From: Andalucia godoyi And28
Lineage: Eukaryota > Protista > Jakobida
DNA length: 64,000 bases
Direction of reading: 5' to 3'
Assembly (NCBI GenBank): GCA_009859145.1
Contig: VRVR01000023.1
Location: forward strand, 56,814 to 120,813
The translations under genes and the position numbers were made by a program. The notes under the pieces were generated by a model that was given only the letters and a program-made list of their open reading frames with translations, was not told where the DNA came from and searched no databases. Numbering within the stretch: the first letter of the stretch is position 1; each line of letters opens with the position of its first letter. Of this stretch, positions 23,108-55,103 are shown piece after piece.

Positions 23108-23896
23108 AGGAAGATGCGCTGGATATGTATGACAAGACACAGAATGACCATGTTCAGCTTGTGGGATACGTGCTCCTTGCGTGGCCTTTTTTTTTTTTTT
23201 GGTTTGCTCGTTCAATCGGGTCGCTGTTTGTCGTCGAGCTGCTGTTTTTGACTTTTTCGTATGTGCGGTAACACTTCTTATCGGCTTCGATGTAGTATAC
23301 TGTACTGTAATTGTTATCAACGGCGAGTCAAGAAATCTGTGTTGTGCGGATGTCCAAAGTCCACAATGACGGATGACGGATGATGACCCAATGAATCATG
23401 AAAACCGCATGTGGAAATGCCCGGAAGTACGGTACGACGGTTTGCATAAAAAAGATCCTTCAGAAAAAGGCTCCCCGGGACAAGCACTTTTTCAAAGCAA
23501 ATATATATGTATATGTTTACTGCTCACAATTCTCGATCTGATGAAGCGTATTCCAGATCTCCCTCCCTCTTTTTCATCGTGAGGGTGTCGGTTTTAAAAA
23601 TGTGAACAAAAGGGATTCCACGCGGTAAAAGTCTACTCGATGCTACACCGAAAGAAGGAGCACTACAAGAAAGCAACCTTCATTGAGGAGACACCCCCGT
23701 CCAAGAACGACAACGACCAAACTCCTTTCGATTCCCTGCACTCACGAAAACAATGACGAAATAAAGAAGCGTGAAACTTTGGGAAAGAGAAATCTCGGTA
23801 AAAGCCCATTCAGTTTTGGAAACCGAAGCACAACGCTTGTAGCCACAGGGAACCGGGATTCATTGCTTTTTTTACAACCGCCATCGGGTTTCCGGC

Positions 23897-31638: not shown

Positions 31639-33249
31639 TCATTTCTGATTCAGTTTCCAGTTGGGTAGCGCATGCGCAGAGAGAGAAGGGTCGGAAAAAT
31701 CAAAGGGAGTGTTGATTGTGAAGGTCAGTGGAATGGTATGGGACGTGGTACGTACAAGCCCCGCAGTCAACAAGATCCAAGACGCAGACTCGGACGGCTC
31801 CGATGCCTGCTCCATTTCACGCTCACTTCTATGAACAGTACGTGCTGAATTCGAAGAGTGCGAATGTGACACGGAGTTTGGATGGCGAGAGGACGAAGAA
31901 GCAAACAGCGGACTGGCTTTGACAAGGACTGGTAATTGATATGCAACCATGGACGGGGATGCTTCGGTAGAATACTGTGCCTTGTACACAGGCTCTAGGC
32001 TGCTGTCGTGCAGAACATGATGAGCGAGCGCAGCGTCCTTTGCAGTTGGCATTGCTGCGGGTGAAGTATCCAGGCTGGTAAAACAGACCGAGGACAGATC
32101 GAGCACGTCTCCGAACATTGCTTCAAAGCCGACCGAGTCGTGCACGTGAACCATCGTACCGCCGTTCAGGACAATGCACACGACACCCCAGCGAGACAAG
32201 GAGTTCAGAGTCTGCAGTACAGCATTGTTTGAGAAAATCAATTGGGATCGGAAAGTAGCGAGATCTTGTGCACATCGCTGATGATTGTCTGGAAGAGGCA
32301 CTGAGGTATCTGACGAGAACAACGTTTCTTGGTCGTCACGGGCGGCTTGACCCGTGGACACGGATGAAAGCCTCACAGCAGACAGTAATAAATTGCTATT
32401 TGACTGAAAAAGAGAACGAAACATGTGTGCAGCTGCTGCAACCTCGGCCAGCAGCTGCTGTCGAGAGCGGAAATCCCTCTGCAAAGTCCTTCCTGTCTGA
32501 AGTAAAGAAAAGAGCTTCGAATGAATGCGATCAGTGGCTTGTGCACCGATGAAGTGGTGATGGGAAGTCTGCAATCCTGCAGGGGGCTTGCATCCGTCAG
32601 CCAGCGAATCGTATGTCAAATTACCAGATGCAACGGTAGTCCGCTTTGTCAAATCATCCTGGAGCATCGGCAGGCTGGAAGACGATGACAAAGACATGGT
32701 TGCTTGCGCTGCTGCTGCTGTCGTTGTCATCATCGCTGATGGCAATGATCCAGAATGAAAATGCACGGAGAACAGCCCAGAGTGGGAGTGGGACGAAAAC
32801 GTCTGGGACGTTTGCACAGAAGACCTGGAGTTGTGTGACGAATTGCCGCTGAAACCGGGATGGTTCTGAAAAGGGAGAGCGGCCACGGAGAAGTGCTCGT
32901 CTCGTGTAGCCGATGAGGATCCCGATCCTGAAGATGTAGAGCTCTCGGAGTGCTTGGAAACAAAACAAGAATCCGCTTCTTCTGCGGAGCAGTCCAGATG
33001 ATTTCTCACACATCTGGCGCACGGCCAGGACTCGGAACAAGCGGTATGCGACATCCTGCAATTGTAACATGCAAACTTCCGAGGCTTCTTTCGCAGTGCA
33101 CTGTCCGCAAGCGGCCCAGAACGATCTTTGCCAGGACTGATGCTCCGCTTTGTGCTCTTTGGTCGGGAACCACTTGGTCCGCCGCCCTTGCCAGAGCTGC
33201 GCGACCCATCCGAGGGACAATCTGCATGAGATACTCGAGGGCTGGACAT
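31639..33249 (-). CDS. Zn(II)2Cys6 binuclear-cluster transcription factor, 536 aa
   Basis: ACYNCRMSHTACSESWPCARCVRNHLDC = C-x2-C-x6-C-x5-C-x2-C-x6-C preceded by basic RKKPRK; ATG at 33249. Confidence 0.88.
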   Translation of the reverse strand: MSSPRVSHADCPSDGSRSSGKGGGPSGSRPKSTKRSISPGKDRSGPLADSALRKKPRKFACYNCRMSHTACSESWPCARCVRNHLDCSAEEADSCFVSKHSESSTSSGSGSSSATRDEHFSVAALPFQNHPGFSGNSSHNSRSSVQTSQTFSSHSHSGLFSVHFHSGSLPSAMMTTTAAAAQATMSLSSSSSLPMLQDDLTKRTTVASGNLTYDSLADGCKPPAGLQTSHHHFIGAQATDRIHSKLFSLLQTGRTLQRDFRSRQQLLAEVAAAAHMFRSLFQSNSNLLLSAVRLSSVSTGQAARDDQETLFSSDTSVPLPDNHQRCAQDLATFRSQLIFSNNAVLQTLNSLSRWGVVCIVLNGGTMVHVHDSVGFEAMFGDVLDLSSVCFTSLDTSPAAMPTAKDAALAHHVLHDSSLEPVYKAQYSTEASPSMVAYQLPVLVKASPLFASSSSRHPNSVSHSHSSNSARTVHRSEREMEQASEPSESASWILLTAGLVRTTSHTIPLTFTINTPFDFSDPSLSAHALPNWKLNQK

Positions 33250-35265
33250 TCTGCAACGCTTTGAATGGCCACGAGCGATCCGGTTGGTTGTGAAGAAGCG
33301 GAGTGGGTGGCTGTGAACAAACAAATGCTTAACACACAGATGCTGGTGATTTGATGGTACTCTCACGTTGCTGCGCACTCCGATCGTCGTTGCTGCTGGG
33401 CTTGCCACGAAATCAGCTCATATTTGTACCACATCCGATCACGTCAGCACGTAACAGACGAGCAGCCTGCTGCGGGCTCTGCAAGCACACGTCAGTCCAG
33501 TTGACGGGCCAGTGCAGGGTCGAGGAAACACAAAGAAAGCAACTGCCAGCACGGGTCACAGTGGAACACCCGACAGAACACTTTTTTCTCTCTCTCGCCC
33601 GACAGGCAAGAACAATCCAAAACCGGGAGCGACAAATAGGGATGGCTTTACTGTACATGCTTTTGCAAGTCGCAGCTTCTGCCACCTGTTATATATTTCT
33701 GGCACGTGCCCACCAGCGGGGAGGGCGGGCTCTCAGCTCGTGACCGTTCTCTTTCCCGGCCGTCTTTTAACGTGCACAAATCCACCACCGCATTTTTTAC
33801 AGAATAAAAGAGCTGCTACATGAACACAGCCGAAGCACCGTTATTTCATTGCGACAGTCTGTTCACCTTCGCGAGATGCGAGTTTGTGCGAACCTTGTGC
33901 AGACGAAGGGGGAGAGCGGTCACCCCGAGCTCCTGTTTTTTTTATCTTCTTTTTTCTCTTTTTCTTTTTTCCTTTTTTTTTGTGGGTCATTGTTACAGCG
34001 CCAATGCGGAGTTCCCTGGTGGCACGGGAACGACGGCACTCAGGGGTGAGGTGGCGAAGGGCTGGCGGGTGGCCAGATCAGCCCACTCTGCATCTTCCCC
34101 GATGAGCCCGTTAAGAAGATGTATCAAGACAAGGAAGCCCGCATATCGGACACACGGAGCAAGTTCCAGAGTTGTAACTGGAAAGCTACGTAAAAAGCCT
34201 GTTCGTCAGTGCAGACATTGGGTGCGATGAAGCTTGCGAGACAGAGGAAGAAAGCCACTTTAAGAAATTTCGCCACATTTTCGCCGTGATTCCGAGTGGC
34301 GGCATCGAGAATCTGAACGGAAGGCGAACCAAGTATGACGAAAAGACGAACAAGGTTACAATGCAGCAGAGGCAGAATGCGATTCTTTCTCGCTGTGGAA
34401 GCAGCGGTCCAGTGGAACTCACAGCTAAAGGAAACGACAAGCGAATTTTGGCGGGCGGCGGGAACTGAAAAAGGGCCGAAGAGAATGCACTTTTCTGCCA
34501 CGTCCGAGCACCTGCATGCAGACGACTTGTTTGTGTTGGAGGTCTTCCAGGCAGACTCTCAGGACGAGGTCTTCGGGGGTGCTGCAAACTTGGAGGCGGG
34601 AGGCTGCGCTTGCTGCTGCGCACGGAAACTTCCGTCCGTCAAACCGGCCATCAGATGGGCAGAGGATCCTGATAAATATCCTTTCTTGGCAATTCACAAT
34701 CCTCCCGGAAAGGCTCTGCAGTATGAAAAATACTTGATGGCAATCAGATCCAAGATTTGCACAAGCAACCGTCGGAGACGGAGTTCAAGTTGTCCACTTC
34801 GTGAGTGATGTGGAGGCAGAGGAGGAAGGCATCGACATCCGGCTCCTCCTTCGAACTGCTCCTACTGAAACTTCTGACGAGCACCGTCATTTCGAAGTTC
34901 AACTCGTACACTAAACTCCGTGAATTCTGTTAAGTCCAAGCAAATTGCAAGAAGAAGCAGCGCCACCGTCGTCGAGGGCAACTCGCAGCGAGACCCCGTC
35001 TTCTTCGTTTTCCGCGAGAAAGCCATAAGCGGCAGCCAACCAACATTCGCAGGTTTTGTTCCTTCTAACAAGAAAAGACGGTGAAGCCGAGTATTTTCGA
35101 CGTCGTTTTCCTTTTCACGGTTATCCAAACGAGGCTTTTTGTTTTTGTATTGTGCGGTTTTGTCACTGGTTCTATCGTGACGCCGTCAGTTTATTGATTC
35201 TTTGCTTTGCTGTTGTTGTTTTTTTGTAATCATTGGGGGCGGTCTCCGCAGCAGCAAAGAAAGAA

Positions 35266-38324: not shown

Positions 38325-38739
38325 CCGCAACCATTCACCGGCAGATCAGTGCAGCCGAGGAGTTAACTGAGGCTGCTAGTAGTGTGTGCTTATCAATCTC
38401 GTTTTTTGTTGTTGTTTTTTTTTGTTTTTTTTGTTTTTTGGCTCTCTCCCCTGTTGATAAAACGATCCAAAAATCTCGATCGTTGACGGCGTTGTCTTTC
38501 CCCCCCACTGTGCTTAAAGGCCGGAAGTCGCCAAGTCGGGCAAGTAACGGGGCAACTACAGAAATTCTACAGCAGTTTTCGAAGACCGCTCGCTCAATGG
38601 TTCGGCGAACATCGTTTTTTGTTGTTTCTCTTTTTGAAACTGCAAACGCTTCACCACTGTTCAGACGCGACTTACTCTTATTTTGATTTTTCGATGCAGA
38701 TTATACGGTTTTCAATTCCCTATTTTAAAAAATGGCATA

Positions 38740-41700
38740 ATGGGACAAGGAAACGTGAAAAATGCAAAAGTTGAGCAAGACAAACTACCAGAAGCGGAAG
38801 AAGACGCGAAGTCTCTCGTGTCGTCGTCGTCTCCAAAATCCGAAATGTCTCCAAAGACTACGACCACGGCCACGATGCCTTTGTCGACATCGACGTCGAC
38901 GACGATGATTCTGGTGTCGCCGTCGCCGTCCATGCAATCCGATTTGAAGAAACAGCATTCTTCGCTTTTTGAACTCCCTCCTTCTCCCAAGAAGAAGAAA
39001 GGCAGTCCAAAAATGCTGAAGAAATCCAGTCCGGGAGGCTCCGGAGCGTCACCGGTGACTTCTCCAAAGTCATCGCTGAATACGGCAAGGGAACATGTTG
39101 ACGAAGAAGAAAAGAAAAAGGAGAAATCAAAGCACGAAATGGCTCGAGACGACTTCTTTGATCATTTTCGGAAGCACGTGCAAGTGTGCTTCAAGGGAAA
39201 CCGCGAGCAACAACTAAGCGTGGCGCTGCTATTTGAAGAAGTGCTGTGCGACGCTGACTGCCAGTTTTTTCTTTCCGAAAAGGAAAATGGCCTCGATGCG
39301 TTGTTTTCCCTGTTCCGAGCCGACGACGAGAAAATTCTGGAGCACTCTTCCAGATGTATTGCGTACCTTGCAACGGTCGGAGACGATGTCCGAAGAACGA
39401 TGGCACTCCGAGACGTTCTGGACAGATCCGTTCGCTTTCTGGGTCACAAGAACTGGAAAATATCCATGAACTGTGTCGCGGCCGTGTGCAACATAAGCTA
39501 CGAGACGAAGCTTGCGGAATCCATTGTCGACAACTACGAAGTCTGCCCGACTATCGTGGGTTTGCTCAAGCACAAAAGGCTGGATGTCATTCAACAGGCA
39601 GCCCGCTGCTGTGCACAAATCGCTTCAAATGGCAAGTATTACAGAGATATGCTTCTTTCTCTCAAGATTGTACCCATTCTCATTGCAGGACTGACCATCA
39701 AGGACTCCAGGACACTGTTCCAAATATGTCGAGTCATTGGAGAACTAACAAAGGACGTCGAAGTCGCAGCAGGATTCATCAAGAAAGGAGTTCTTCCAAG
39801 ACTACTAGACATCGTTGCTCACGATCAGGAAATGCCGCGTCTGGAGGCGTCGAAGATCATCGCAAACATGTCGGAAATAGACGCAGAGAAAAAGGAAATC
39901 TTCGAAGCCGCGGAAGAGTCGCTGATTAACGCCGCCCAGTTCGCCAGCTTAGACGTCAAAATCCACGCTCTCCGTGCCTTGGCAAATCTCTCGGAGAACG
40001 ACGAGGTTCGAACATCGGAGGACATTGAACAGCAAGAAGAAGAGGAACAACATTTTCGAGCGGAACTCAATAATATTCTTAGAGATTTCGTTCAGAGACT
40101 TGTCACAGATCCGATCTTTGCCGTTTTCATGCATTGTTCAGAGGAGGAACAGACGCCGGAGGTCTTTGCATCGTTGGGATACAGACCGTTTGTTGCTCCC
40201 ATTGATCTGCAAATCATCAAAAAGAGAGTAGAAGAGTGGTACTACACAAACCTTGTGTCTTTTAAGGCGGATGTGCTGTTGATAGTAGACACAGTGAAGG
40301 CAACTACCAATGCGTCTTCCGACGATCCCTACAGTCTTTTCGCAAAAATGGAAGCTCTTCAATTCCTGGTAGAAGAGATGGTCAAGAAAGTCGAAATGGA
40401 GCAACCGTTGTTGGTACGCATCACCAATGCCTATAAGAGTCGACTTCAGGTCCGAAGGTCGCTGGAACACGCTCGTATGTCGATCATTGCTGGAGGCGCG
40501 GTATCCCTCATCCCCTTCTTCATATCCTCAGACAATGACCTCCTGTTCCATCTATCAAGACTCATGGCAAACTGCGTCGTTCCGCAGTACAATCAACAGC
40601 GAATCATTCGTGACGGCGAATTGGAACCAGTTAACCACGTCCTTCGATTTCATGATGATGAACAAACACTAACAGAAATATTACGCTTTCTTGGAAACCT
40701 TGCTCAGCTCGACGAAGCGAAAATCAGATATCCTAAACTTGGCTTTCTCGAGGAAATCATCAAATTCGCACGCTCCGAGAGTCAACTTCTCCAGCGCTTT
40801 TCCATGCGATGTCTGGCGACAATGTCGACACTGCAAGCATCCAGAGTGCACATTCGAGATGCTGGGGGTCTTCAGATCATTGCAAACTGTGTGTGCTTTG
40901 GTTCTCCCGAGGTGCGAACAGAGGCCATCAAAGCAATGGCATGGATGGTGGAAGACGAGCCTTCCCGGCAGCTTGTCTTTGAGTCGGGAGCTTTTAACGT
41001 CGTGTTGATCGTTGTAGCCTCTGCAAAGGGACCGGAAAGGAGCCTGCATACTTGGCAAGCATGTCGCCTCTTGTCGCAAATGGCCGCCAGTCCGAAATGC
41101 AGGTCAACAATGGTTCTGATGGGGGCGATTCCGGTTGTGCTAAAGACTTGTGAAGAATTCATGGGAAGAAATCCCGTGCATGGCTATGACTGCTCGGTGT
41201 GTCAGAAGCCTTTTGAGTCAGTTCGCTATGCGTGCTTGTTCTTGTATTTCCTGTCGCAAGAAGACTCCCTTCTTTCGGATTTGCAAGTGTGCGGCACACA
41301 CAGAATCATGCTCCAGCTTGCTGTGGAATCCACCGACGCATGGATACGACAGTACTCGATGGCGTGTCTTGCGAACGTTCTCGCGAAACAGGACGTGCAA
41401 GACTGGTTCTATGAAGAGGAAGCCTTTGTCAGAATCCTGGACTTCGCCCAAGATGAAAATGAGGATATTATAGGAACGTCAATAGGCGTCTTGGCTTCGT
41501 GCGCGATGCATGAATCGATGAGGGAAACAATTGTAGAAAACGGGATTATTGAAAGATGTGTAGAGATCCTCAAGGACAAGGCGATCAGCGACGGTATCGG
41601 AGAAGCCGACGCAATAGCGAAAAGCGAAGCGTGTCGATTACTCGGTAATGTGTGCTCTGAAGCAGAGTACGCTGAGTGTGCTGACGATCTGCAGGCATGC

Positions 41701-44700
41701 GAGGAGCTTGTCAGGCTCATTTCTCAGTCTGATGATCAGCAAGTGCAAAAGAATGCTGCGCGAGCCATCGAGTCCCTCACCGCGGATTCGGACTACTTTC
41801 GACTGAAATTCGCTCAGGAACTGGATGCAATTGTCCCCCTGATAGCTTTGGCTTCTTCTCCGTTTCCTTTTGTTCAGCAGCATGCGGTCGGCTCCATCTC
41901 AAACATCGCACTCGAACCAGAAAACAAATCCTTGGTAGTGGACTCGGGCGCAGTAGCGGCACTGGTGCACCTGACACTCTCAAAGCATGCTTCTGTACAG
42001 TCCCGGGCAGCAGAAGCACTCGGAAGGCTGGCAGAAGAAAGCGAGAACAGAGACATCATCGCAGATGAAGAGGCAATCCGCCCTCTTGTGAACTTGCTTA
42101 GGTCTTCGGACAGTACAGTCCGTGAGAAGTCCATCGAAGCGCTGCTGAACCTGGGACAGAAGAATGCAGAGAACCAGTATGGAATGTACATGGAAGGTGC
42201 ATTGGATCGTGCACTGGCCTTACTGCAAGACGCAAATGAAAGCACGAAGTCCTTGGCGTACGATCTGGTCTCCCGAATGGCAGAAAACGACATGATCAAA
42301 GGTCTCCTTTTAGAAAAAGGAGCCTACGAGCCCATCATTCTTATGGCACAAGCCCCGGCTGTCGAGCCACGACGACACTGTTCCTCTATTCTGCTTCGTC
42401 TGGCTGATGATGACAACCACCGCGAAAACCTGCTACGGCACGACATCGGGCGCATCGTGCAAGAACTGGGGATCTGCCAGGATGTCATTATCGCTGGAAA
42501 CGGAATCAAGCTAATGCAGTCTTTTTGCTTGGATGATGCTGTTCTTTCGAAGTACATTCTAACTCCGTTTACTGCAGAAATGTCGTCCAGCCTATTGGAA
42601 GTGAGAAAGCTGGAAAAGAAAAGGCCGTGGAAGGCACAGCTCTTCTTGGGGCCGCAGCGCTCGCAAAGTCAACGAGATTCCATTGGAGGACGAAGAAGAT
42701 CCACGTGTCACGATGTTGTTGAAACGGAATCCGCACAGCTCCGTGTTTCTCGAGATTCCATACCGGTTCCCGAAGGATATGGGCATCTTATCTTCTGTCA
42801 GTGGATCTACTGCTGCGTTTCGTACATTGGATCCCGCACTGCCAATCTGCAGCGGCAGTCGCTGATACTGTTGTCAGTACTTTGTGCTACACTGGAACCG
42901 CATCACGCTGACTTCCTCGCAGCCGAGCGCAGCTTGGACTGCATAGGACGACTACTTCATTGTGTTCGATCCCTGGACGCCGGTACGAAAGCACTCGCTC
43001 TTAATGTGCTTTCGAAGCTGACAGCCGTCTCCAATGTTGCTCGAACAAAAGCAGCGACACATCGTCGTTTCAAACACGTGATACGGTCACTGAGTCTCTA
43101 CGACAAATTGCTGCGCGTTTCCTCTCCAGCCAAAATCTGGGTTGACTGGGATGCTTGCCGGCTGCTGGCGAACTGCGCTGCCTTGCCGTCACTGCAAAAG
43201 CTGCTGTATGGCAACACCGAGATTTTGCTTTCGATCACACGGTTGCTCAGAAACACAAACGTGTCTGTCCGAGTAGAAGCTCTTCGATGCATTGCCAATC
43301 TGTCTCAGGACAAGAATAACAAAGTCCACATTGGATCGAACAGATCTCTCGTGCACTCCATTCTGAAGCATCTCACCAGCGAGTACGTAACTTTGCAACA
43401 GTTTGCTGTGGAAGCGTTGGCACACCTCGTCGTCGCTTCGGAGAACATAGATCGCCTAATGATGGTTTCAAAAGAGATATTTCAGTCTTCAGAGACAGGA
43501 CAAGCGGCGACCTCCGATCCTCTGGTGAACGTTTTACAACAACTCTGCCATTCCAGAGACGAAGAGGTAGTCCGACACTCCATCCGTGCGCTGGCATCCT
43601 TGACAACTCGGGTGGCTTTCAAGAGGAGCTTGTATCTGAAAGAAATGATCGAATCCGTGATCTTGGATTTGATGTATTCACAAAACGTCGAAATTATCCA
43701 ATCGGCTACAAAGTGCATGGGAAATGTCGCCATGAACGAACAGATAAAGAGCGTGGTCGTTCTCGACACCAAACTGCTCCAGAAGATTGTTGCCGGGCTG
43801 ATGCACGTGGCAGTTTCACGGCCGTCTCTTGATTCAGTCGCGGAAGTGTCCAGGGCTATTGCATATCTTGCAACCGACAGGCCGTTTGTGGATTGCTTGC
43901 TGCGGAACGAAGGCATGGAGACTGTTGTCTCCATGATTCAGTGTCCGGTGACATCTTTTGCTGGCATCATCCAAACTGAAGTTGCAACCTGCATTCAAAT
44001 AGCAGCGGACGCGCTGAGAGCATCGGCCACTTTCCTTGACAGCCACGGAGACGCGAAGGCTGCTTGGCTGAAGTACGGAGGACTCGAGAACACATGTGTC
44101 GTGACTACGCAAAGCGCAGACATGATACTGCAGTACTGGAGCTGTCGATCCCTACAGACACTGTCCCACACAAAAGACGAAAGGCATACTATTGTGCACG
44201 CCGGAGGATATCGGCTGTTTGCAGCTCTGTGTCGGACTTCGTACGACGAAGTGATATTGTTTTCTACTTCTATGGTCATAGAGTTCATGGAAAACATCAA
44301 CGAAATAAGAGAATTTCACATGTCCGGAGGAACGGAGGCTCTGGCACTGTTTCTGATGACAGACAAAGTGGAGATTTGTGACAGTGTTGTGAAAGCTATC
44401 ACTATTTTGGCAGAGGATCAGGAAACTGTGGAGTCCTTTCTGGGTTTGGAGATCGTTTCATCCTGTGTAGCGTTGCTTGACTCAAAGTCTTTCCTGATTC
44501 GCCAGAACTGTATGAAGATTCTCGCCGATTGCTCTCTGAACGGCACTTGTGAAGAGAGCGTTGTTAGTCTTGGAACACTCAACCGGTGCATGGAAGCTCT
44601 AGAACCCTCTTCGGATATCAGACACTTCATTTCCCTTGGAAGTCGCCATCCATCCGTGCTGTTTCTGCGAGAATCTTTGCGAGCACTCTGCAATCTTGCG

Positions 44701-47700
44701 TTTCGAACTGATGCGCAACAAGGGTTGTTTCGTTCTGGGATTGTTGGAAGACTCCTGGGTCTGCTATCTGTAGACCCCCAAACAGTGCCGTCTTCATTTA
44801 CAGAAACGCTGGTGGACCTGCAAAAATTCACGATGATAACGTTGGCATACATTTCTTTTGAGCAGTCATTTCGTCCCCAGATTGCCAGCTTGGCTTTAAT
44901 GGCGATTCGTCGAATGATGGACCATCCGGAGCCACTAGTTGGTGCATACGCTGCTTCGATCATGGGAAACATCGTCGAAGAAGCAGCGCTGATGAAGTAT
45001 GTTCAAACTTGCCGCCCACTCGTCGCAAGTGTCAAGAAACTCCTCCTTGCTCCAAAGTCTGAAGCTGTTGGGAGCGAACTGGATGTTGTAGACCTGACTG
45101 CGAAAGCTTTCGCAAACATGTCCGGCTCTATGGATTTGGAAGAAGAGGTATCAAAGGTTCACATCATTCCGACAATCATTCGTCTGCTTCCAGAGGTTCC
45201 AGAATGGTTCTTGAATTCACACCGGAAGCAACCTGAGAAGAAGCTGTCGTTTCATGAGTGTTTTCCAGAAGTTAACGAAGAAAAGGTGGAGGACCTGTGC
45301 CGCTGCATCGCAAACATCTGTGTTCTGAAGACGGAAAACAAGCTGGAATGCGTAGCGCAAGGCGGACACAAGAGACTGCTATTCATTGTATCTGTTCTGC
45401 AAGAAGACTTGGCGGTGACGCTGCAGGCTGCTAGGGCGCTCGGTTTTATTTCCGAAGACGAGAAAAATGCAAAAGAGATATCGAATTTTGGTGGTGTTGC
45501 TGCAATGGCCTGTCTGATGAACAACAATTCAGTCAGAGAGCTTCGACTGCTGTCTCTCCGAACTCTTGCTCCAATAGCTTTCATCCCCGAACAGCGAGAA
45601 GTTATTCTTCAACATATAGACAGCTTCTCTTTTGTGATAAGGAGCATCAAAGAGAAAGACGAAGAGACTGCATTTTGGTCCCTGAAGTTTCTTAAAAACA
45701 TTCTGCATCATGAGGCGGCAGTGGAGAGGATGCTGGCAGACGGAGCCCTCCAAAGTCTGATGCTGATCTTTTCCGATATGGCTAGAAGCATCCGATGCGT
45801 TCAGACCGCAATTGATGTTCTCCACGAACATCGAGAAAACGAAGACATACAAGTCATAATGCTGCAAGAACGAGAAGCACAGGCGCTGCTGCCGCACACG
45901 GCGTCGTCGTTTCTTTCCGTGCAGTCGAAAGTCATCGAAATCTTTGTGTCACTTTCCAAGAATTCACGCAATCACAGGTCCTTGCTGGAATCGCAAGCTA
46001 TTCACCGACTTGTTTCCTTTGTCTATTCTCCTGTCCACCTTCATTTCGAACTGGCACTGCAGTTTGTCTTCAATATTGTGGGAGAAGAGAGCAACGCGGA
46101 ATGGGCACCCAATTTGATGAATCGGCTGGGACTTCTTCCGTTTCTGGTTGATCTCATGCTGGCTTTAAAAAGAAGCGGAAAGGAGGTCTTCACACACAAA
46201 CTGGCATACGAAATTTTGAAAAAGATTTCCGTCTCGGAAGAAGTGTGCTACGCCGTTTTGGAGGCCGGAGGAACAGAGGCAGTGGATTTTCTGGATATTA
46301 AGATTTCCGAAGATCCCGTGCCTCTCCCTCGATTGATTGATGGGGAGATTCATTCTTCGTCGTTGCAGCATTTCAAATACGCTGTGAAAAGAGTGATCAT
46401 GTGGAACCGAATGCGGGCAGCAGAAGGCCCGCTGTATCCTCCAGCGTGCGTTGTGTCAGGCGGAGGGTTGGCGGGAGGAGAGGCCGGCACTCCAGTGGTT
46501 ATTTTCGTTTCGTCGAGGGATCGATTTGAAAGACGAAGAAAAGACACATCGCGTGGTCTGTTCACTGTGGCAGCCGTGAACGAACGAACGAAAGAGACCA
46601 TCCAGTTTTCCGAGACAGTGGTTCGGAACATTTACCAGTTCTCATCGGATCAGTTTACTTTGGTGGGAAGATACTTGTTGTCGGTTACCACCGCGTCCGG
46701 GGAGCATGTGGATCAGAGCCCTTATATCTTGGAAATCGCGCCTGGAAACGTGCACCACCCTCTGTGTGTGGTTCACAAAGATGATTTGCAGCATGGCTTC
46801 ATCCGTGCTGGTCAAAAGTCCAACTTCAGAATTGAAGCAAAAGACGCTTTCGGCAATCGAATTCTTGGTGGAGGACTGGGAATTGAAGTTCGCATGGTGT
46901 ATTTCGGATCGCAGACATCCCGCCTTCGGAAGGGAGTGCAAATTGTTGACGAGTCAGTGGCCTGGTGCAAAGTGAACGATCCCGACGACGGCTTCCTGGA
47001 AGGATCTCTGTGGACAAAATCCGCAGGGTTTTATGAGTTACGCATATCTTTGCACGGAGCAGAGATGCATGGATCCCCTCTGATCTTCGAAGTGTATCCG
47101 GCCGGCGTGGATCCGACGAAATCGTCGTTCAACTTCAGTGGTACTTCTTCGTGTCCTGCCGGATGGCTGTCCCAGGGGCGAGTGATCACACGGGATGCGC
47201 ACGGGAACGAACTCCTCAAAGGAGGTCTTACGGTGCGATCGTTTGCATCTGCCGAAAATGGAGCCAGTGAAGAATTTCCCGTTGAAGATCTTCAGGACGG
47301 AGCCTACATTGTGTCCATCCGACCGTCGATATCCGGAAAGCTTCGTATCAGCGTCGTAGTAGATGGTCAGGAAATCATTGGTTCCGGGTTCACAATGCAA
47401 GTGTATTCAGGACCTCCACACATTCAGTCTTTTCGTGCTGTGGGATACGGCACAAGAAAAGCAAGAGTCGGTATCCGAAATCGTTTTCTGGTTCAAGCAA
47501 GAGACAGATTCGGAAACGATCTCCACTCTTCATTCTTGCCACTGACAGTCGAAATCCGAGACGCCTCCACAAATGTGACCGAGGACGTTGGTGTGGTGAA
47601 AACCGGTGGAGACGGAAAGTATCGAGTGGAGTACGAAGTCACCGTTGTGAAACCGTTTCACATTTACATATTGTCTGATGGGATTCCAACAGCAGAATCT

Positions 47701-47730
47701 CCTCTGAAGATTTCTGGTGTCATTTACTAA
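38740..47730 (+). CDS. Giant armadillo-repeat protein with inserted bromodomain and four C-terminal filamin (ABP280) repeats, 2996 aa
   Basis: Many ARM repeats (e.g. AIRPLVNLLRSSDSTVREKSIEALLNL); bromodomain core PIDLQIIKKRVEEWYYTNLVSFKADVLLI at 40075-40390; filamin repeats with A-G..F....D..GN...GG and GSP motifs at 46447-47727; ATG at 38740 (MGQGNVK). Confidence 0.9.
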   Translation: MGQGNVKNAKVEQDKLPEAEEDAKSLVSSSSPKSEMSPKTTTTATMPLSTSTSTTMILVSPSPSMQSDLKKQHSSLFELPPSPKKKKGSPKMLKKSSPGGSGASPVTSPKSSLNTAREHVDEEEKKKEKSKHEMARDDFFDHFRKHVQVCFKGNREQQLSVALLFEEVLCDADCQFFLSEKENGLDALFSLFRADDEKILEHSSRCIAYLATVGDDVRRTMALRDVLDRSVRFLGHKNWKISMNCVAAVCNISYETKLAESIVDNYEVCPTIVGLLKHKRLDVIQQAARCCAQIASNGKYYRDMLLSLKIVPILIAGLTIKDSRTLFQICRVIGELTKDVEVAAGFIKKGVLPRLLDIVAHDQEMPRLEASKIIANMSEIDAEKKEIFEAAEESLINAAQFASLDVKIHALRALANLSENDEVRTSEDIEQQEEEEQHFRAELNNILRDFVQRLVTDPIFAVFMHCSEEEQTPEVFASLGYRPFVAPIDLQIIKKRVEEWYYTNLVSFKADVLLIVDTVKATTNASSDDPYSLFAKMEALQFLVEEMVKKVEMEQPLLVRITNAYKSRLQVRRSLEHARMSIIAGGAVSLIPFFISSDNDLLFHLSRLMANCVVPQYNQQRIIRDGELEPVNHVLRFHDDEQTLTEILRFLGNLAQLDEAKIRYPKLGFLEEIIKFARSESQLLQRFSMRCLATMSTLQASRVHIRDAGGLQIIANCVCFGSPEVRTEAIKAMAWMVEDEPSRQLVFESGAFNVVLIVVASAKGPERSLHTWQACRLLSQMAASPKCRSTMVLMGAIPVVLKTCEEFMGRNPVHGYDCSVCQKPFESVRYACLFLYFLSQEDSLLSDLQVCGTHRIMLQLAVESTDAWIRQYSMACLANVLAKQDVQDWFYEEEAFVRILDFAQDENEDIIGTSIGVLASCAMHESMRETIVENGIIERCVEILKDKAISDGIGEADAIAKSEACRLLGNVCSEAEYAECADDLQACEELVRLISQSDDQQVQKNAARAIESLTADSDYFRLKFAQELDAIVPLIALASSPFPFVQQHAVGSISNIALEPENKSLVVDSGAVAALVHLTLSKHASVQSRAAEALGRLAEESENRDIIADEEAIRPLVNLLRSSDSTVREKSIEALLNLGQKNAENQYGMYMEGALDRALALLQDANESTKSLAYDLVSRMAENDMIKGLLLEKGAYEPIILMAQAPAVEPRRHCSSILLRLADDDNHRENLLRHDIGRIVQELGICQDVIIAGNGIKLMQSFCLDDAVLSKYILTPFTAEMSSSLLEVRKLEKKRPWKAQLFLGPQRSQSQRDSIGGRRRSTCHDVVETESAQLRVSRDSIPVPEGYGHLIFCQWIYCCVSYIGSRTANLQRQSLILLSVLCATLEPHHADFLAAERSLDCIGRLLHCVRSLDAGTKALALNVLSKLTAVSNVARTKAATHRRFKHVIRSLSLYDKLLRVSSPAKIWVDWDACRLLANCAALPSLQKLLYGNTEILLSITRLLRNTNVSVRVEALRCIANLSQDKNNKVHIGSNRSLVHSILKHLTSEYVTLQQFAVEALAHLVVASENIDRLMMVSKEIFQSSETGQAATSDPLVNVLQQLCHSRDEEVVRHSIRALASLTTRVAFKRSLYLKEMIESVILDLMYSQNVEIIQSATKCMGNVAMNEQIKSVVVLDTKLLQKIVAGLMHVAVSRPSLDSVAEVSRAIAYLATDRPFVDCLLRNEGMETVVSMIQCPVTSFAGIIQTEVATCIQIAADALRASATFLDSHGDAKAAWLKYGGLENTCVVTTQSADMILQYWSCRSLQTLSHTKDERHTIVHAGGYRLFAALCRTSYDEVILFSTSMVIEFMENINEIREFHMSGGTEALALFLMTDKVEICDSVVKAITILAEDQETVESFLGLEIVSSCVALLDSKSFLIRQNCMKILADCSLNGTCEESVVSLGTLNRCMEALEPSSDIRHFISLGSRHPSVLFLRESLRALCNLAFRTDAQQGLFRSGIVGRLLGLLSVDPQTVPSSFTETLVDLQKFTMITLAYISFEQSFRPQIASLALMAIRRMMDHPEPLVGAYAASIMGNIVEEAALMKYVQTCRPLVASVKKLLLAPKSEAVGSELDVVDLTAKAFANMSGSMDLEEEVSKVHIIPTIIRLLPEVPEWFLNSHRKQPEKKLSFHECFPEVNEEKVEDLCRCIANICVLKTENKLECVAQGGHKRLLFIVSVLQEDLAVTLQAARALGFISEDEKNAKEISNFGGVAAMACLMNNNSVRELRLLSLRTLAPIAFIPEQREVILQHIDSFSFVIRSIKEKDEETAFWSLKFLKNILHHEAAVERMLADGALQSLMLIFSDMARSIRCVQTAIDVLHEHRENEDIQVIMLQEREAQALLPHTASSFLSVQSKVIEIFVSLSKNSRNHRSLLESQAIHRLVSFVYSPVHLHFELALQFVFNIVGEESNAEWAPNLMNRLGLLPFLVDLMLALKRSGKEVFTHKLAYEILKKISVSEEVCYAVLEAGGTEAVDFLDIKISEDPVPLPRLIDGEIHSSSLQHFKYAVKRVIMWNRMRAAEGPLYPPACVVSGGGLAGGEAGTPVVIFVSSRDRFERRRKDTSRGLFTVAAVNERTKETIQFSETVVRNIYQFSSDQFTLVGRYLLSVTTASGEHVDQSPYILEIAPGNVHHPLCVVHKDDLQHGFIRAGQKSNFRIEAKDAFGNRILGGGLGIEVRMVYFGSQTSRLRKGVQIVDESVAWCKVNDPDDGFLEGSLWTKSAGFYELRISLHGAEMHGSPLIFEVYPAGVDPTKSSFNFSGTSSCPAGWLSQGRVITRDAHGNELLKGGLTVRSFASAENGASEEFPVEDLQDGAYIVSIRPSISGKLRISVVVDGQEIIGSGFTMQVYSGPPHIQSFRAVGYGTRKARVGIRNRFLVQARDRFGNDLHSSFLPLTVEIRDASTNVTEDVGVVKTGGDGKYRVEYEVTVVKPFHIYILSDGIPTAESPLKISGVIY

Positions 47731-47792
47731 TATCGTACAAGAGAAAGGGGGAATTACAGTTCTGTGTTTTAAATATAAAAAACCGGTGAGAA

Positions 47793-48709
47793 CTATGATG
47801 ACGGGACAGACGCGAGATACTGCGGTTGCTTTTGAACCCATTCCACGTATTCATCAATGACACTCGGCCAAGCAAGGTCTTCTTTGTAATTAGCAACGGA
47901 GAGAGGATACGCAATGATGAAATCCAAGAACATCGTCCAGGTATCCTTTGAAACAGCCTTCTTGTAGACTTGCGAGACAAACTCGATCCACAAAGACAAC
48001 AGTGTGTACCGCGGTGACAGCAACATTGGCCAAGCCATCGCAGCAACATCGGGAGCCATGGATTTTTGGCTGGGATCCTTCATAAAAGAGAAGCAGTACA
48101 CATAGAATTGTTTGAACAGAGTGGCGTTCGACATGTAGTTCTTCTCGGCGATCGTGAGATTTTTCGAAAGCAGCCCGATCGTGTCTGAGGACAATCGTTG
48201 GCAGACAAGGAGGAATTCCACTCTTTGAATACAATAATTTTGTGCACAGCCGGATAAATAGCAGAAGAAGACAAAAGTCATGGAAGTGATGTCAATCCCA
48301 AGGGCGTCCGCGAGAGCAGACAGGCCAGGTCCTGATATCGAATCCTCGGAAGGATCGGCACCGCCGTTGATGCCCGTCTTTTTGAAATTATCGAACATCT
48401 CGTCAATCTTCTTGGGGTTCGCATTCTTGAGCATTCTCGCGAAATCATGCTCGTGTTCGAAATAGTAATCCACGGCTTGCTGGACATTGCCTCCAGACTT
48501 GCGAAGCGACTCTATAGCAATTTGCTCGCTGTTCCACAAAAAAAAAAATTTGACAATTTCAGAATAAACTATTCGACTCATCAAAGAACAAACAACTCCG
48601 TCGTTCATTCCAATTGTTTGGAAATTGTGGAAATTTAAATCTTTGAAAACACATACTTGGCATGAGAAACCACTTCCAAAAATTGGCGTACAGATCTTTG
48701 GGCAAGCAT
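47793..48709 (-). CDS. DCN1: DCN1-like neddylation E3 (UBA-like + PONY), two exons 48709-48657 and 48528-47793, 262 aa
   Basis: Spliced N-terminus MLAQRSVRQFLEVVSHANEQIAIESLRKSGGNVQQAVDYYF restores the UBA-like domain; PONY motifs FKQFYVYCFSF, WIEFV, VSKDTWTMFLDF, AWPSVIDEYVEW. Confidence 0.92.
48529..48656 (-). other. Spliceosomal intron, 128 nt (GTATGT...T12 GTGGAACAG)
   Basis: Canonical donor, poly-U tract and CAG; removal joins two frames into a conserved DCN1 N-terminus. Confidence 0.88.
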
Positions 48710-49113
48710 CAATGATTGACAATAATAACACGAGTCTTTACTTTTTGCCTTGTCTGGATTGACTGAGCAACAGCTTGGTTTCTGTACTTTTAAATAAATA
48801 AAACGCAAAAAAAGACTTTCTCTCTCTGTTTGCCTTTGTTTTTTTGTTTTTGTTTTTTCCAGCTTCCTTTGGGTCCAGTCCTGGTCTCAATGGGTCTCAA
48901 TGCTTTCTGCCTTGATGCTTGGAGCCTTTTCCTTTCCTTTTCTTTCTTTGCTTCTCTTTTTCTGCTGCTCTTCTGCTTGACCGTGAATTCTGCAGAGACG
49001 CATCATAATCGGAGCCTTGTTCCTGTTTCTAGATTGTGAGGTTTTATTATTATTAATTTTTTTGTTTTGGTCTTTGGATTTTTATTATTTTCTTTTTCTG
49101 TGTTGATCAAAAA

Positions 49114-49332
49114 ATGGTTACCACTGGTGTTCCGCCTCGGATGATCCTTTCGCTTTATCGCGAAATCGTACGCAAAGGAGAGCAAACACTTGTTCTTACT
49201 GATCTGGAGTTTTTCCGGCGAAAAGTGCGATCTGAATTCGAAGCCGGCCGCCGTGAGCTTAAACCAGAGAATGTGTCTCTTTTGTTCCAGGCAGGTAAGC
49301 GGTTTGCATCGAAATTAGGAGGTCTGCTGTAG
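49114..49332 (+). CDS. LYR-motif protein, MIEF1-MP (altMiD51/L0R8F8)-like, 72 aa
   Basis: LSLYREIVRKG..L..TDLEFFRRKVRSEF...G..F..KLGGLL parallels the human microprotein as recalled (LSLYRALLRQG..LRYTDRDFYFASIRREF...KG..F..KLGRII). Confidence 0.8.
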   Translation: MVTTGVPPRMILSLYREIVRKGEQTLVLTDLEFFRRKVRSEFEAGRRELKPENVSLLFQAGKRFASKLGGLL

Positions 49333-50354
49333 TTGTCTTCGTTCTCAATGATGTTTCTGAGGAATGCACATCTTTTTTTATTTTTACAGTATGATTGGGT
49401 GCGGAGTGCGTACTTGCGCCGGGGGGGTGTATGTATGTGTTGGAGGTGGGGGCGAGTTAACAGCTATCTATTCGTTCAGTGTCGAAAAAGCACGGTGTCT
49501 TGCGTCTGACCATCTTGCGATTTGATTCTTTTATTATTGTTTTATTTATTATTGTTAATGTATTGTACAAATTCATGTCCCCAAGCGCGAAAAGTGTGCA
49601 TGTCCAGAGGTGATGGATCGAGATTGGAATGGGACCCGGAACATTTACTTGAAGAACAGGGTGCACATGTACTTGTGTGTGTTGGGGCCAGCTCTCTTGA
49701 CAACTGGTTCGAAGGATCAATTGTCATGCAACAATGCAATAGATGCAGCGTATACCGCAGGCGTGGGATTGTGTTCCATTCCGAAGTGCTCGGGCGTTTT
49801 TGCTTGCCTTTTGGAGCTAGGCAACATTCGTTCAATGAAATGCTGCCCCGCCGCGTGCTTTGCGGTACGCCGAACACGATCAGATTGTGCCGAAGATCAT
49901 GGCAGCTGCTCCGTACGCCGCGATTGCTAGGAAGCATCGGAATTACTTTGAAAAAGAAGTCGCGAAGTTTTCGACAAGAAAGGAATTCACGCTTTCAGCA
50001 TTGTGGCCATATTTAGCGGCGGGTATTCATATTTCCCGTTTTGGCAATGGCATTCCCAGCCTTCGAAACGTCCTTCCAGGGTTGTATGCGAGCAGATTTT
50101 GAGGCGTCTCCTGCTGCCTGATCCAAAAAGGAGATTTTCCGACTTTGTCACAGCTCAACTGTGCATATCGTGGATGCCACGCCGGCAACGAATCAGAGAG
50201 GGAAGGGGAGGTTTGGGAGGTTTTAAACGTTCACTCTGCAACGTTTTATACGTCCATGGATTCTCCTTCTTCTTCATTATTTCTTCCAAAACAGCAACAA
50301 AAGACATCGAGGAGTAGTAAGCGAGCCGCAGAGGGGTTAAAAATAAAAAAAAAA

Positions 50355-50402
50355 GAAAAAGAAAAAGAAAAAGAAAAAGAAAAAGAAAAAGAAAAAGAAA
50401 AA
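50355..50402. repeat. (GAAAAA)8 hexamer repeat immediately upstream of a Myb gene
   Basis: Eight units directly visible, 12 bp before the ATG at 50415. Confidence 0.95.
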
Positions 50403-50414
50403 TAATACCAAAAG

Positions 50415-52613: not shown

Positions 52614-54209
52614 CTGCGCTGAAGCTCGTTTTAAAAGACGTAGCGGGAGACGCAGACGGAGAAGGAGAATGAAAGAGAACCCTCACTCCTATCAGAAAAA
52701 GAAAACCCTTGGCGAAACAAAAACTCGCTTTGAATGAAGCACGCAAAACCAAGCTGAGAAACATCTGCTCTATTCGCATCAAACGGAAAAAAGCTGCCGT
52801 AATTGCAACAGCCAAATGCCGATGTTCCTGATGCTCGAAATCACACGTGTGGTAAATGCAAAAAATCCAACATTGGCAAGACGCAACCCAAGAGCAAAGT
52901 TCCCATTTTTTTAATTACTTTTTTTTCATATCCGAGAGTGGATCGGAACTCTAAAGGATTTGACACTGCCCCCCTCAAACATATCACCTCTGAAAACCAA
53001 CAAAGGCAACAACAAGATAATAAATGAATTAGAAAGCCCAGTCAAAGACGATGACCACATCAAAGCACCAAACCGTTAACGACTGTCCGAGGAATGCACG
53101 GCAGGAACAAGAGTATCGTGAAAGCGGCAATTTGTGCCACGACACCAAAGGAGAGATAGCATGTGTTCCTCTCACAACAGTTCAATGACTGGAGCGAGAG
53201 GGAGGAAGAGAATGTGATATTTTTTTTACTGTGCTGAAAACTTAAAGGTGAATAAAACTCCATTTACTGCGTCTTTCTGCTCGTTCGCTGGAACCTACCT
53301 GATCTCGCAGGCTCGCAGGCTGCATAGACAGATTGGGGGAAAACAGAAAGAAACATGAAGAGGAACGACTAGTGACCAAAGAAGCACTGCAGCTGCACAA
53401 GAGGTGTGATTCTGGATTGCATAAGGAAGTTTGAGTCGAGTGCGGTAATTTAACAGTATTTCATGTCCTCCCCGGATCTCTCACGGAGACACCAAAAACG
53501 ACGGTGAATCTTTTGCGTCCAGGACGGAACAGTACTGCATGTCCATCAGGAATGGACGACTGGATGGACACGCAAACTCCCCGGAGGTGCATCAGCCGAC
53601 GGAAGGCCAGCAGACGTGAGACACGGAACGCAGGGTTTACCCAGTTTGCCAGCATTGACTGCTCTGACGTATCTTCCGATGGAATCACGACCCATTCCGC
53701 AAAAAGAAATTTTCCAGCGGAAGCCCACACTCTGCTTTGCATGTCAATCAGATGCTCACACGCCCGGCCAATCTACGCTTTTCTTCGTTGCGAATTGCCC
53801 GCAGTGCCTATTCACAAAAGAGAGCAGGGGAAACACCAGCTTTCAACCATCTTTCCCCAACCTCCCCCTGATGCCCCCCTTCCCTGTGCCAAGCCACCTT
53901 TCCCCACGAAAGCATTTTTTTCACTTGTGCAAAGTTTTGGTTTTTTTGCTGACGTCGTCTTATCTCAGCCTAACCCTCTCTGGTGCAAAAAAAAGTCCTC
54001 TTCTCTTGGATTTCGACCCCTGCAGTCTGTTTTCACTCAAGTGCACTGTCTGTTGAAAAGTCGTCCTGTTTGGTGTTGTTGTTTTGTTTCGTTTTGTTTT
54101 GTTTTGTTTTGTTTTTGTTTTTTTGCTTGTTTGTTTGCTTTCACCAGCGCCTCTGGTCTCTTCTTTCTTCGTTGCCGTCCAAGTTTCGGAAACACCGTTC
54201 CCAAGATCG

Positions 54210-55103
54210 ATGCTTCGCTTGGACTTCTCCGATTGGACGTCCGAGTTCACGAGTGATTCTCTCTGTGGATCAGTGAACTCGTGCCCTGCAATATGCGATA
54301 ACTATCCGCATCCTTTCGACGATCCACTCTTATCAGCTGCTTCTGCGACATCTCTCTTTTTTGGCGCATCATCGCTTCCGAATCTTACAGCTTCTTTTCC
54401 GTTTTCTTCTTTTTCCGACAACCATTCGCATTCTCAGTCAAACTCAAACTCTCACTCTCCAAAGAGTTTCGATTCTGGAGACAGTGAGGATTTCAGAGAA
54501 GTGAATGGATGCCTGTTCCCCCTCACAGACCTCGCGTCATCATCCCTTTCAGTCTCTGCTACTTCTGCAAAGGAAACTGCCACTGGAATCACGAGGATGA
54601 TGATGGTCAGACCGGTTAAGCAACAGCAGAACGGGGAACGGCTGCAGACCCAATGCGAAATGCTGGACAGCCCAGTGGTTGGAACGGTGAAACGTCGTTG
54701 CAATCGGAAACGCGAGAGAAACGATTCAATCGTTACTCTCACCTCTGGAACTGACTCCGCAGGTGTTGTTGCCGATGCAATCGTAGAAGACAAGGAAACG
54801 CCATATGGACATGGAAGTAATTCCCCGCCAAGTCACTCAAAATTGTCGAGCAGCACGCCGACGAGTTCAAGTAGGTACGCAAAGAAGAGAAAGTCGTGTG
54901 TGGAGTGCATCCGGATGCATAGAAGATGCAGCATGGAGAAACCGGCTTGTCAAAGATGCGTTCGACGGAAAATTCCTTGTTGTTATGTGCATGCTGAGGA
55001 TGATAGTTCCAATCCAAAGTCCAGTGAAAATCAAAAGCTATGGGCGAGTGCTTCGCTTTCGCAATTGGAGATTGGGACCTTGGATCACCATCCTTGCTGT
55101 TGA
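54210..55103 (+). CDS. Zn(II)2Cys6 transcription factor with C-terminal cluster, 297 aa
   Basis: KKRKSCVECIRMHRRCSMEKPACQRCVRRKIPCCY; first ATG at 54210. Confidence 0.85.
   Translation: MLRLDFSDWTSEFTSDSLCGSVNSCPAICDNYPHPFDDPLLSAASATSLFFGASSLPNLTASFPFSSFSDNHSHSQSNSNSHSPKSFDSGDSEDFREVNGCLFPLTDLASSSLSVSATSAKETATGITRMMMVRPVKQQQNGERLQTQCEMLDSPVVGTVKRRCNRKRERNDSIVTLTSGTDSAGVVADAIVEDKETPYGHGSNSPPSHSKLSSSTPTSSSRYAKKRKSCVECIRMHRRCSMEKPACQRCVRRKIPCCYVHAEDDSSNPKSSENQKLWASASLSQLEIGTLDHHPCC

Follow-up and report, generated by a model that had tools for sequence, protein, structure and literature searches.

A predicted giant protein of Andalucia godoyi joins armadillo repeats, a bromodomain-like fold and filamin-type repeats in an arrangement not found elsewhere in our searches

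The stretch of DNA analyzed here (the window) comprises 64,000 nucleotides of contig VRVR01000023.1 from the jakobid Andalucia godoyi And28 (assembly GCA_009859145.1). Its forward strand contains one uninterrupted open reading frame (ORF; 38683..47730), whose first ATG codon lies at position 38740, with none upstream of it in the ORF, and whose 2,996-residue product starts with the sequence MGQGNVKNAK. This protein consists of armadillo (ARM) repeats between about residues 175 and 2520, a bromodomain fold placed inside them at about residues 436-556 and four filamin-type immunoglobulin (Ig) repeats at residues 2567-2996 (Table 1). Each of these parts is ordinary, whereas their ARM-bromodomain-ARM-filamin combination appears nowhere else in the sequence searches described below. 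An earlier annotation of the window, hereafter the original prediction, had proposed this order of domains and could not match it to a known family, and the order was indeed recovered by Pfam, by sequence searches of the PDB and by a fold search.

Table 1. Features of the giant-protein locus and its divergent neighbor, in window coordinates (pieces, 300-residue segments of the protein; P0076, a fragmentary relative described in the text; NLS, nuclear localization signal)
Feature	Residues	Position	Strand	Evidence
RasGEF gene, adjacent	553 aa	36663..38324	-	Pfam RasGEF 132.7 bits; translation
Divergent spacer between RasGEF and giant gene, 415 bp, T-rich tracts		38325..38739	.	Sequence; codon log-odds negative in all frames
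Giant-protein coding sequence, complete, single-exon	2,996 aa + stop codon	38740..47730	+	ORF list; translation; exact EukProt model; codon log-odds
Disordered N-terminal region, nine S-P motifs, Gly2 (MGQGNVK)	1-140	38740..39159	+	Composition and motif scan
KKKK basic patch within PPSPKKKKGSPK	84-87	38989..39000	+	Sequence; putative NLS-like or SPKK-type motif
ARM block 1, roughly 6 repeats	~175-430	39262..40029	+	Pfam Arm, V-ATPase_H_N, Proteasom_PSMB; AlphaFold; collinear with P0076
Divergent bromodomain fold	~436-556	40045..40407	+	Pfam PF00439; PDB phmmer and profile; AlphaFold and Foldseek
ARM block 2, most canonical repeats at residues 955-1240	~575-1270	40462..42549	+	Pfam Arm 106.7 bits on piece 4; PDB matches
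Central linker, basic and Ser-rich (KLEKKRP, GGRRRST)	~1276-1400	42565..42939	+	No Pfam family; codon log-odds ~0
ARM block 3, degenerate ARM/ARMC5-like repeats	~1400-2520	42940..46299	+	ARM_ARMC5 and Arm on pieces 6-8; xxNLx recurrence
Filamin-type Ig repeat 1, weakest of the four	2567-2670	46438..46749	+	Pfam Filamin 20.2 bits, profile positions 4-92 of 93, piece 9
Filamin-type Ig repeat 2	2671-2787	46750..47100	+	Pfam Filamin; Ig_GEX2_N at residues 2689-2785
Filamin-type Ig repeat 3	2788-2890	47101..47409	+	Pfam Filamin; PDB TRIM71 filamin domain E=2.1e-5
Filamin-type Ig repeat 4, C-terminal end	2891-2996	47410..47727	+	Best Pfam Filamin stretch at residues 2895-2989; PDB

An ORF of this size with an orphan domain combination could be an artefact of gene modelling or assembly, in which at least two adjacent genes on the same strand, for instance an ARM gene and a four-filamin gene starting from about Met2554, were fused or an in-frame intron went unrecognized. 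In keeping with this idea, Met2554 and Met2559 are situated just upstream of the first filamin repeat, the codon signal is at its weakest (log-odds about 0) across residues 1276-1400, and, as a singleton, the protein lacks any full-length relative that could back up its model. We nevertheless regard such an artefact as highly improbable. At 49% GC, a stop-free run of about 3,000 codons is expected by chance with a probability of (61/64)^2996, or roughly 1e-62, and even 125 stop-free codons would occur in non-coding DNA with a probability of only about 0.003 (both hand calculations). A codon log-odds score trained on ten other genes of the window favored frame 0 over almost the whole ORF and was clearly positive at the junction between the ARM and filamin regions (residues 2501-2625), whereas true intergenic DNA of the window scored negative in all three frames. 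Moreover, the T-tracts typical of intergenic DNA in this genome are absent from the ORF, and the public EukProt protein model, which stands alone in its cluster at 90% identity, is identical over all 2,996 residues, indicating that annotation done independently led to the same single-exon structure. Since the frame-0 signal holds across the ARM-filamin junction, the sequence makes a fusion in particular unlikely, and on the codon signal we largely discount the mis-assembly that the original prediction had named as a possible pitfall. The stretch at residues 1276-1400 most likely represents a disordered hinge between two ARM super-blocks. We take the ORF to be a genuine single-exon gene of an intron-poor microbial eukaryote, which must also be flagellated, as indicated by a CFAP77 gene in the window (6149-7117).

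In the whole-protein Pfam scan, ARM families dominate (ARM_ARMC5, 207.9 bits in 10 stretches; Arm, 129.3 bits; ARM_PUB, 83.3 bits), accompanied by Filamin, with 4 stretches totalling 100.5 bits, and Bromodomain, whose 22.4 bits lie just above the cutoff of 21.7. When the protein was cut into ten 300-residue pieces and rescanned, ARM-type matches were obtained in every piece from residue 175 to about residue 2400 except for residues 1201-1500, which matched no Pfam family. A scan for xxNLx, the signature of ARM helix 3, returned 22 sites separated by about 42 residues or multiples thereof, so that the solenoid reading holds over the whole length. In total, the protein contains about 45-50 repeats in three blocks, many of which retain the helix-3 Asn. 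In an AlphaFold model of residues 207-560, block 1 forms repeated three-helix units with a predicted local distance difference test (pLDDT) score of 80-96 and is connected to the bromodomain bundle by a short low-confidence linker. The most canonical repeats, at residues 955-1240, matched a designed ARM protein (E=2.9e-49), Vac8 (E=3.2e-26, spanning residues 1044-1165), ODAD2/ARMC4 (E=1.9e-24) and importin-alpha (E about 4e-15) in the PDB, and the linker region gave no PDB match before about residue 1460. The armadillo solenoid of ~2,400 residues described in the original prediction is thus real, although its length comes to about 2,100-2,200 residues after removal of the bromodomain and the linker at residues 1276-1400.

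For the domain inserted between blocks 1 and 2, the Pfam call alone is marginal and partial, with a PF00439 score that climbs to 26.6 bits on a 300-residue piece and a match confined to profile positions 7-69 of 84. However, a phmmer search of the PDB with residues 401-607 returned bromodomains almost exclusively (TAF1, ATAD2, BPTF, BRD4, PBRM1), and a two-sequence profile of the window segment and its relative P0076 retrieved TAF1 (E=1.3e-7) and PBRM1 (E=1.6e-7), followed by BPTF, BRD4, BRD9 and PCAF. The bundle is predicted to comprise helix Z, a long ZA loop enlarged by an insert of 5 residues and then helices A, B and C. An AlphaFold model of residues 425-570 reached a pLDDT of 75.7 and a predicted template-modelling (TM) score of 0.70, with low confidence in the ZA loop, and the top 50 matches of this model in a Foldseek search of the PDB were all bromodomains, led by ATAD2/ATAD2B (TM scores 0.70-0.78, probability 1.00). 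Segment-wise structure prediction, as suggested earlier, thus yielded a bromodomain fold for residues 425-570 and ARM block 1 within the model of residues 207-560, and we consider the predicted bromodomain fold at about residues 436-556 established by the combined sequence and model evidence.

The bundle shares its left-handed four-helix topology and the Asn of the BC loop with canonical bromodomains (ATAD2/ATAD2B, both TAF1 domains BD1 and BD2, PBRM1, BPTF), but it is only 17-20% identical to them and is embedded in an ARM solenoid, whereas they reside in chromatin proteins. Asn524 (in KATTN) aligns with the Asn of the TYN motif in TAF1 and PBRM1, the column that anchors acetyl-lysine, although it is preceded by Thr instead of the Tyr found in canonical domains. 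In the HMMER alignment, Phe476 (in PEVF) pairs with the ZA-loop Tyr of the PDY motif and is followed by the 5-residue insert; the alignment of this poorly modelled loop is uncertain, and an earlier single-sequence alignment paired Tyr481, not Phe476, with the Tyr of the TAF1 motif. P0076 displays the reverse pattern, with Tyr in the Phe476 column and Leu in the Asn524 column, while the motifs common to both proteins (LG[YF]xxFVAP[IL]D, NYYT and DDP) are structural. As judged from the sequences, the acetyl-lysine pocket appears only half conserved in the window protein, differently so in P0076 and therefore not conserved between the only two members, which argues against a conserved reader function while leaving room for one in the window protein itself. 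Binding of acyl-lysine by the bundle is accordingly graded as doubtful, and of the acetyl-lysine-reader fold in the original prediction, the fold has stood up but the reader role has not. The same pocket leaves the suggested reading of acetyl-tubulin or other non-histone acetylation without support. It is quite improbable, in our view, that the insert acts as a working acyl-lysine reader outside chromatin that recruits the roughly 330-kDa ARM/filamin scaffold to acetylated cytoskeletal or cortical proteins in a narrow group of protists.

The four filamin repeats were confirmed by the four Pfam stretches mentioned above and by matches in the PDB, even though the first of them, taken by itself, stays under the Pfam threshold (20.2 bits) and counts as one of the four stretches only in the whole-protein scan. 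They have diverged too far to be paired in a self-BLAST of the C-terminus. The closest solved filamin-type domains are those of TRIM71 (the best match), TRIM45, TRIM3, the gelation factor and filamin-A (E=2e-5 to 5e-3), with repeat 4 matching the Dictyostelium gelation factor at E=3.1e-5 and filamin-A at E=3.3e-5. Filamin Ig repeats serve as general interaction and dimerization modules, and TRIM71 is an E3 ligase rather than a cytoskeletal protein. Filamins and the gelation factor (ABP-120) likewise carry tandem filamin-type Ig repeats at their C-terminal end, but they possess an N-terminal actin-binding domain composed of two calponin-homology (CH) domains, and no CH domain was detected in the whole-protein Pfam scan at E<=1; the window protein also has only four, mutually divergent repeats. 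With TRIM71, TRIM45 and TRIM3, it has the filamin domain in common but not the RING, B-box and NHL domains. With no CH domain detected by Pfam and a best solved match to the non-cytoskeletal TRIM71, a cytoskeletal role of the protein finds no support.

These similarities raise the alternative that the giant protein is a substrate-recruiting subunit of a ubiquitin ligase, in which, on the model of ARMC5, the ARM repeats would bring substrates to a ligase of the cullin or U-box type. Its best Pfam models, ARM_ARMC5 and ARM_PUB, its link to TRIM71 through the filamin domain and a DCN1-like cullin-neddylation gene that converges on it 62 bp downstream could all be accommodated by such a function. 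We consider it improbable, however, since BTB, U-box, RING, HECT and F-box domains are all absent in the Pfam scans, the ARMC5 score, summed over 10 stretches, reflects repeat type and not orthology, and proximity says little in a compact genome.

The region preceding the solenoid is disordered, with S, T, P, G and K accounting for about 60% of the first 100 residues, and the piece scan gave no Pfam match at residues 1-140. The original prediction had recognized a possible membrane anchor here, formed by the N-terminal MGQ and a basic KKKKG patch. Both Gly2 and the KKKK patch exist. The PROSITE N-myristoylation pattern PS00008, G-{EDRKHPFYW}-x(2)-[STAGCN]-{P}, requires S, T, A, G, C or N at position 6, so that Val at this position (MGQGNV) causes the N-terminus to fail the consensus. 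In addition, the first 100 residues, MGQGNVKNAKVEQDKLPEAE included, contain no Cys for palmitoylation, and the patch is located ~80 residues away from Gly2, in a disordered stretch rich in S/T-P, with S-P sites on its flanks. The sequence PPSPKKKKGSPK would be read at least as well as a classical NLS flanked by sites for proline-directed kinases, and the proposed membrane anchor is not supported.

The N-terminus thereby bears on two further explanations. The first, developed from the original prediction, would make the protein an N-myristoylated, membrane-anchored cortical or flagellar scaffold whose bromodomain would read, for example, acetylated tubulin and which would work together with the divergently transcribed RasGEF. 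Gly2, the retention of Asn524 at the canonical acetyl-lysine-anchoring position, the flagellar gene CFAP77, the RasGEF gene 415 bp away and the resemblance of the canonical ARM block to the ciliary docking protein ODAD2/ARMC4, to which Vac8 and the designed ARM protein are nevertheless superior in score, are all consistent with this model. It is still very unlikely to be correct: apart from Val6, the missing Cys and the distant patch, Phe476 takes the place of the ZA-loop Tyr in the HMMER alignment, the Asn column is occupied by Leu in the only homolog, Pfam detected neither a CH domain nor any other cytoskeleton-binding domain, and a second divergent gene pair in the window, RTC/eIF2B, has a similarly short spacer (303 bp). 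Alternatively, the protein could be a nuclear or chromatin scaffold, in which PPSPKKKKGSPK serves as a phospho-regulated classical NLS or contacts DNA as an SPKK-type motif, the bromodomain binds acetylated proteins of the nucleus, and further factors are brought in through the ARM and filamin repeats. The KKKK patch fits the core of a classical monopartite NLS with S-P sites on its flanks, the best bromodomain matches include TAF1, PBRM1, BPTF and ATAD2, the anchoring Asn524 is kept, and bromodomains in general are overwhelmingly nuclear. The pocket caveats noted above for Phe476 and P0076 apply here as well, however; PHD, chromo, SANT and AT-hook domains were not detected by Pfam, basic runs resembling an NLS occur commonly in disordered regions, and we know of no established nuclear role for giant ARM proteins of this type. 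A nuclear function is therefore a possibility that we keep in view but hold to be unlikely.

To place the protein among its relatives, residues 140-1339 were compared exhaustively, using phmmer, with 1.84 billion representative proteins, and the best 150 of the resulting 3,055 matches were inspected; the C-terminal 1,650 residues were covered by a word-index search with the full-length sequence. Virtually all matches were obtained through the canonical ARM block. The top ones are ARM proteins of 2,000-4,200 residues from metagenomes, Platysulcus tardus and Albugo candida that are labelled "vacuolar protein 8" or hypothetical, and the best named among them, Platysulcus and Albugo, point only loosely to stramenopiles. 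Three top matches that were scanned for domains contain ARM/HEAT-type repeats alone, plus an EF-hand in one case. Among the 149 best of the 3,055 matches, chaining of BLAST high-scoring segment pairs against the full-length protein identified no collinear orthologue, and neither BLAST nor hidden Markov models built from the window protein's own filamin repeats and bromodomain detected either module. The word-index search with the full-length protein, whose candidate list was swamped, returned only the protein itself, and a search with residues 400-700 returned nothing, whereas a profile of ARM block 1 and the bromodomain retrieved P0076 and two generic ARM proteins only. Two alignment-based metagenome DNA scans produced no further relatives. 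Our literature search on the combination of ARM, filamin and bromodomain modules yielded nothing relevant, with a survey of HECT ligases mentioning filamin and ARM only in separate families. The view that no described family has this architecture has therefore held for both the literature and the proteins searched.

The only specific relative among the matches listed is P0076, a 335-residue fragment encoded on a 1,270-bp contig of the Logan assembly SRR29497146, a sequencing run that appears in no paper we found. It shares 25% identity with residues 207-539 of the window protein, with which it is collinear almost without gaps and which comprise ARM block 1 and the bromodomain as far as the BC loop. 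Being a fragment, it is seen only over this region, in which it differs from the window protein in having Leu for Asn524 and Tyr for Phe476. Two regions of its contig, positions 1-180 and 1187-1270, are of note. The ORF is immediately preceded by (GGA)n and (GTT)n microsatellites, and it ends inside the would-be helix C at AAA/GTGTGTGC, which looks like an exon-intron boundary, so that the source gene, unlike the window gene, may contain introns.

The closest known class is that of the giant "Vac8-like" ARM proteins of protists, such as Albugo candida CCI42216.1 (3,697 residues), Platysulcus tardus EP00753_P011177 (3,982 residues) and the metagenomic proteins mentioned above, which are also very long and built from Vac8/ARMC5-type repeats. 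They are 25-30% identical to the window protein over the canonical ARM block but not collinear with it, and, among the 149 best of the 3,055 matches, none has the bromodomain-like insert or the filamin repeats. None carries a functional name in the sources looked up, and to our knowledge no member has been characterized. Yeast Vac8, ARMC5 and ODAD2/ARMC4 have the same type of ARM repeat, but the similarity is confined to generic repeats, and the window protein is three to five times longer. We considered membership in three named families and rejected each of them: the SH4-type dual acylation motif of Vac8 (Gly2 and a nearby Cys) is absent, and the length is 2,996 rather than about 560-580 residues; the C-terminal, CUL3-binding BTB domain of ARMC5 is missing according to Pfam; and in place of the two-CH actin-binding domain of filamins there is a disordered N-terminus followed by ARM repeats. 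The giant protein falls within the large group of Vac8/ARMC5-type giant ARM proteins that are widespread among protists, but its combination of domains is undescribed.

On balance, we lean towards the view that it is a lineage-restricted, multivalent interaction scaffold. Importin-alpha, Vac8 and beta-catenin bind extended peptides along their concave ARM surface. In a similar manner, the ARM superhelices of the giant protein, especially that at residues 955-1240, may bind extended peptides of several partners along the concave Asn ladder. The C-terminal filamin repeats could add partner binding by beta-strand augmentation, and it is conceivable that they dimerize tail-to-tail, as known for the Dictyostelium gelation factor and for vertebrate filamins, which pair via their last repeat. 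In addition, the bromodomain-like bundle would provide an extra docking module, and the N-terminal region might act as a phospho-regulated segment targeting the protein to the nucleus or the cortex. Several considerations weigh against this proposal. While the set of domains and the retained Asn ladder are observed, the mechanism is modelled on what these domain families do elsewhere, and the suggested dimerization via the final repeat is drawn by analogy. With inspection covering the best 150 of 3,055 matches and the C-terminal 1,650 residues searched by word index, a remote protein of identical architecture may have gone unnoticed. It is also possible, though improbable, that an unspliced in-frame intron lies within residues 1276-1400.

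Provided that the gene model is correct, the protein unites three interaction modules that are each widespread (ARM, bromodomain and filamin Ig) in an arrangement that we have not found described, and it offers a test case for whether protists have reused bromodomain folds beyond chromatin. It also strengthens the case that giant ARM proteins form a large, unstudied class in microbial eukaryotes. Its value lies in serving as a target for localization and pull-down work. One-off domain shuffles abound in protist genomes, and because such events are common, the only relative is a fragment and no process has been tied to the protein, its interest is modest; rather than the best candidate for a new system, as which it had been put forward, it is an orphan architecture from a single, poorly sampled lineage and an entry for the catalogue.

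Turning to the neighborhood, the divergent spacer of ~410 bp that had been noted between the giant gene and the RasGEF gene is real (415 bp), whereas the shared promoter and the signalling module proposed for the two find no support beyond their adjacency. Since the genome is compact and the divergent RTC/eIF2B pair is merely 303 bp apart, this spacer looks ordinary. An exact-sequence contig look-up gave no record of an orthologous locus for the giant gene and RasGEF. Long T-rich tracts (tttttgttgttgttttttttt...) lie on the RasGEF side of the spacer (38385-38445) and may represent an element characteristic of this genome that acts as a promoter or keeps nucleosomes away. At its other end, the giant gene is approached on the opposite strand by the DCN1-like gene (Cullin_binding, 96.9 bits, and a UBA-like domain), with 62 bp separating the two stop codons (47730-47793), so that the 3' untranslated regions of both genes must overlap or be extremely short.

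The other genes of the window, including those for PGK, an RNA cyclase, eIF2B, a GH65 hydrolase and a kinase-phosphatase fusion, look intron-less and are tightly packed. Three stretches of 1.7-2.4 kb each (33409-35232, 48732-50414 and 55104-57535) are devoid of ORFs of at least 200 residues, with a codon signal that is negative in all three frames of the plus strand. Short or intron-containing genes or non-coding RNA outside Rfam might be located there; tRNA and Rfam scans of the window were empty. A 1,015-residue protein encoded at 12677-15724 (+) contains a pro-kumamolisin (sedolisin) activation domain at residues 177-331, with no peptidase S8/S53 match below the 0.001 threshold of the scan. 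Two proteins with a fungal-type Zn(2)-Cys(6) binuclear cluster are encoded in the window (31639-33408 on the minus and 54084-55103 on the plus strand), as are two Myb proteins. The second of these clusters, located near the C-terminus, lies in the latter of two plus-strand ORFs (53504-54256 and 54084-55103, together 53504-55103) that overlap in different frames and could represent one gene split by a frameshift or a small intron. Finally, the kinase-phosphatase fusion is a 2,262-residue ORF (16532-23320, minus strand) in which about 1,550 N-terminal residues without a family match precede a protein kinase domain (residues 1554-1849) directly followed by a dual-specificity phosphatase domain (residues 1963-2075), an unusual pairing in one chain.

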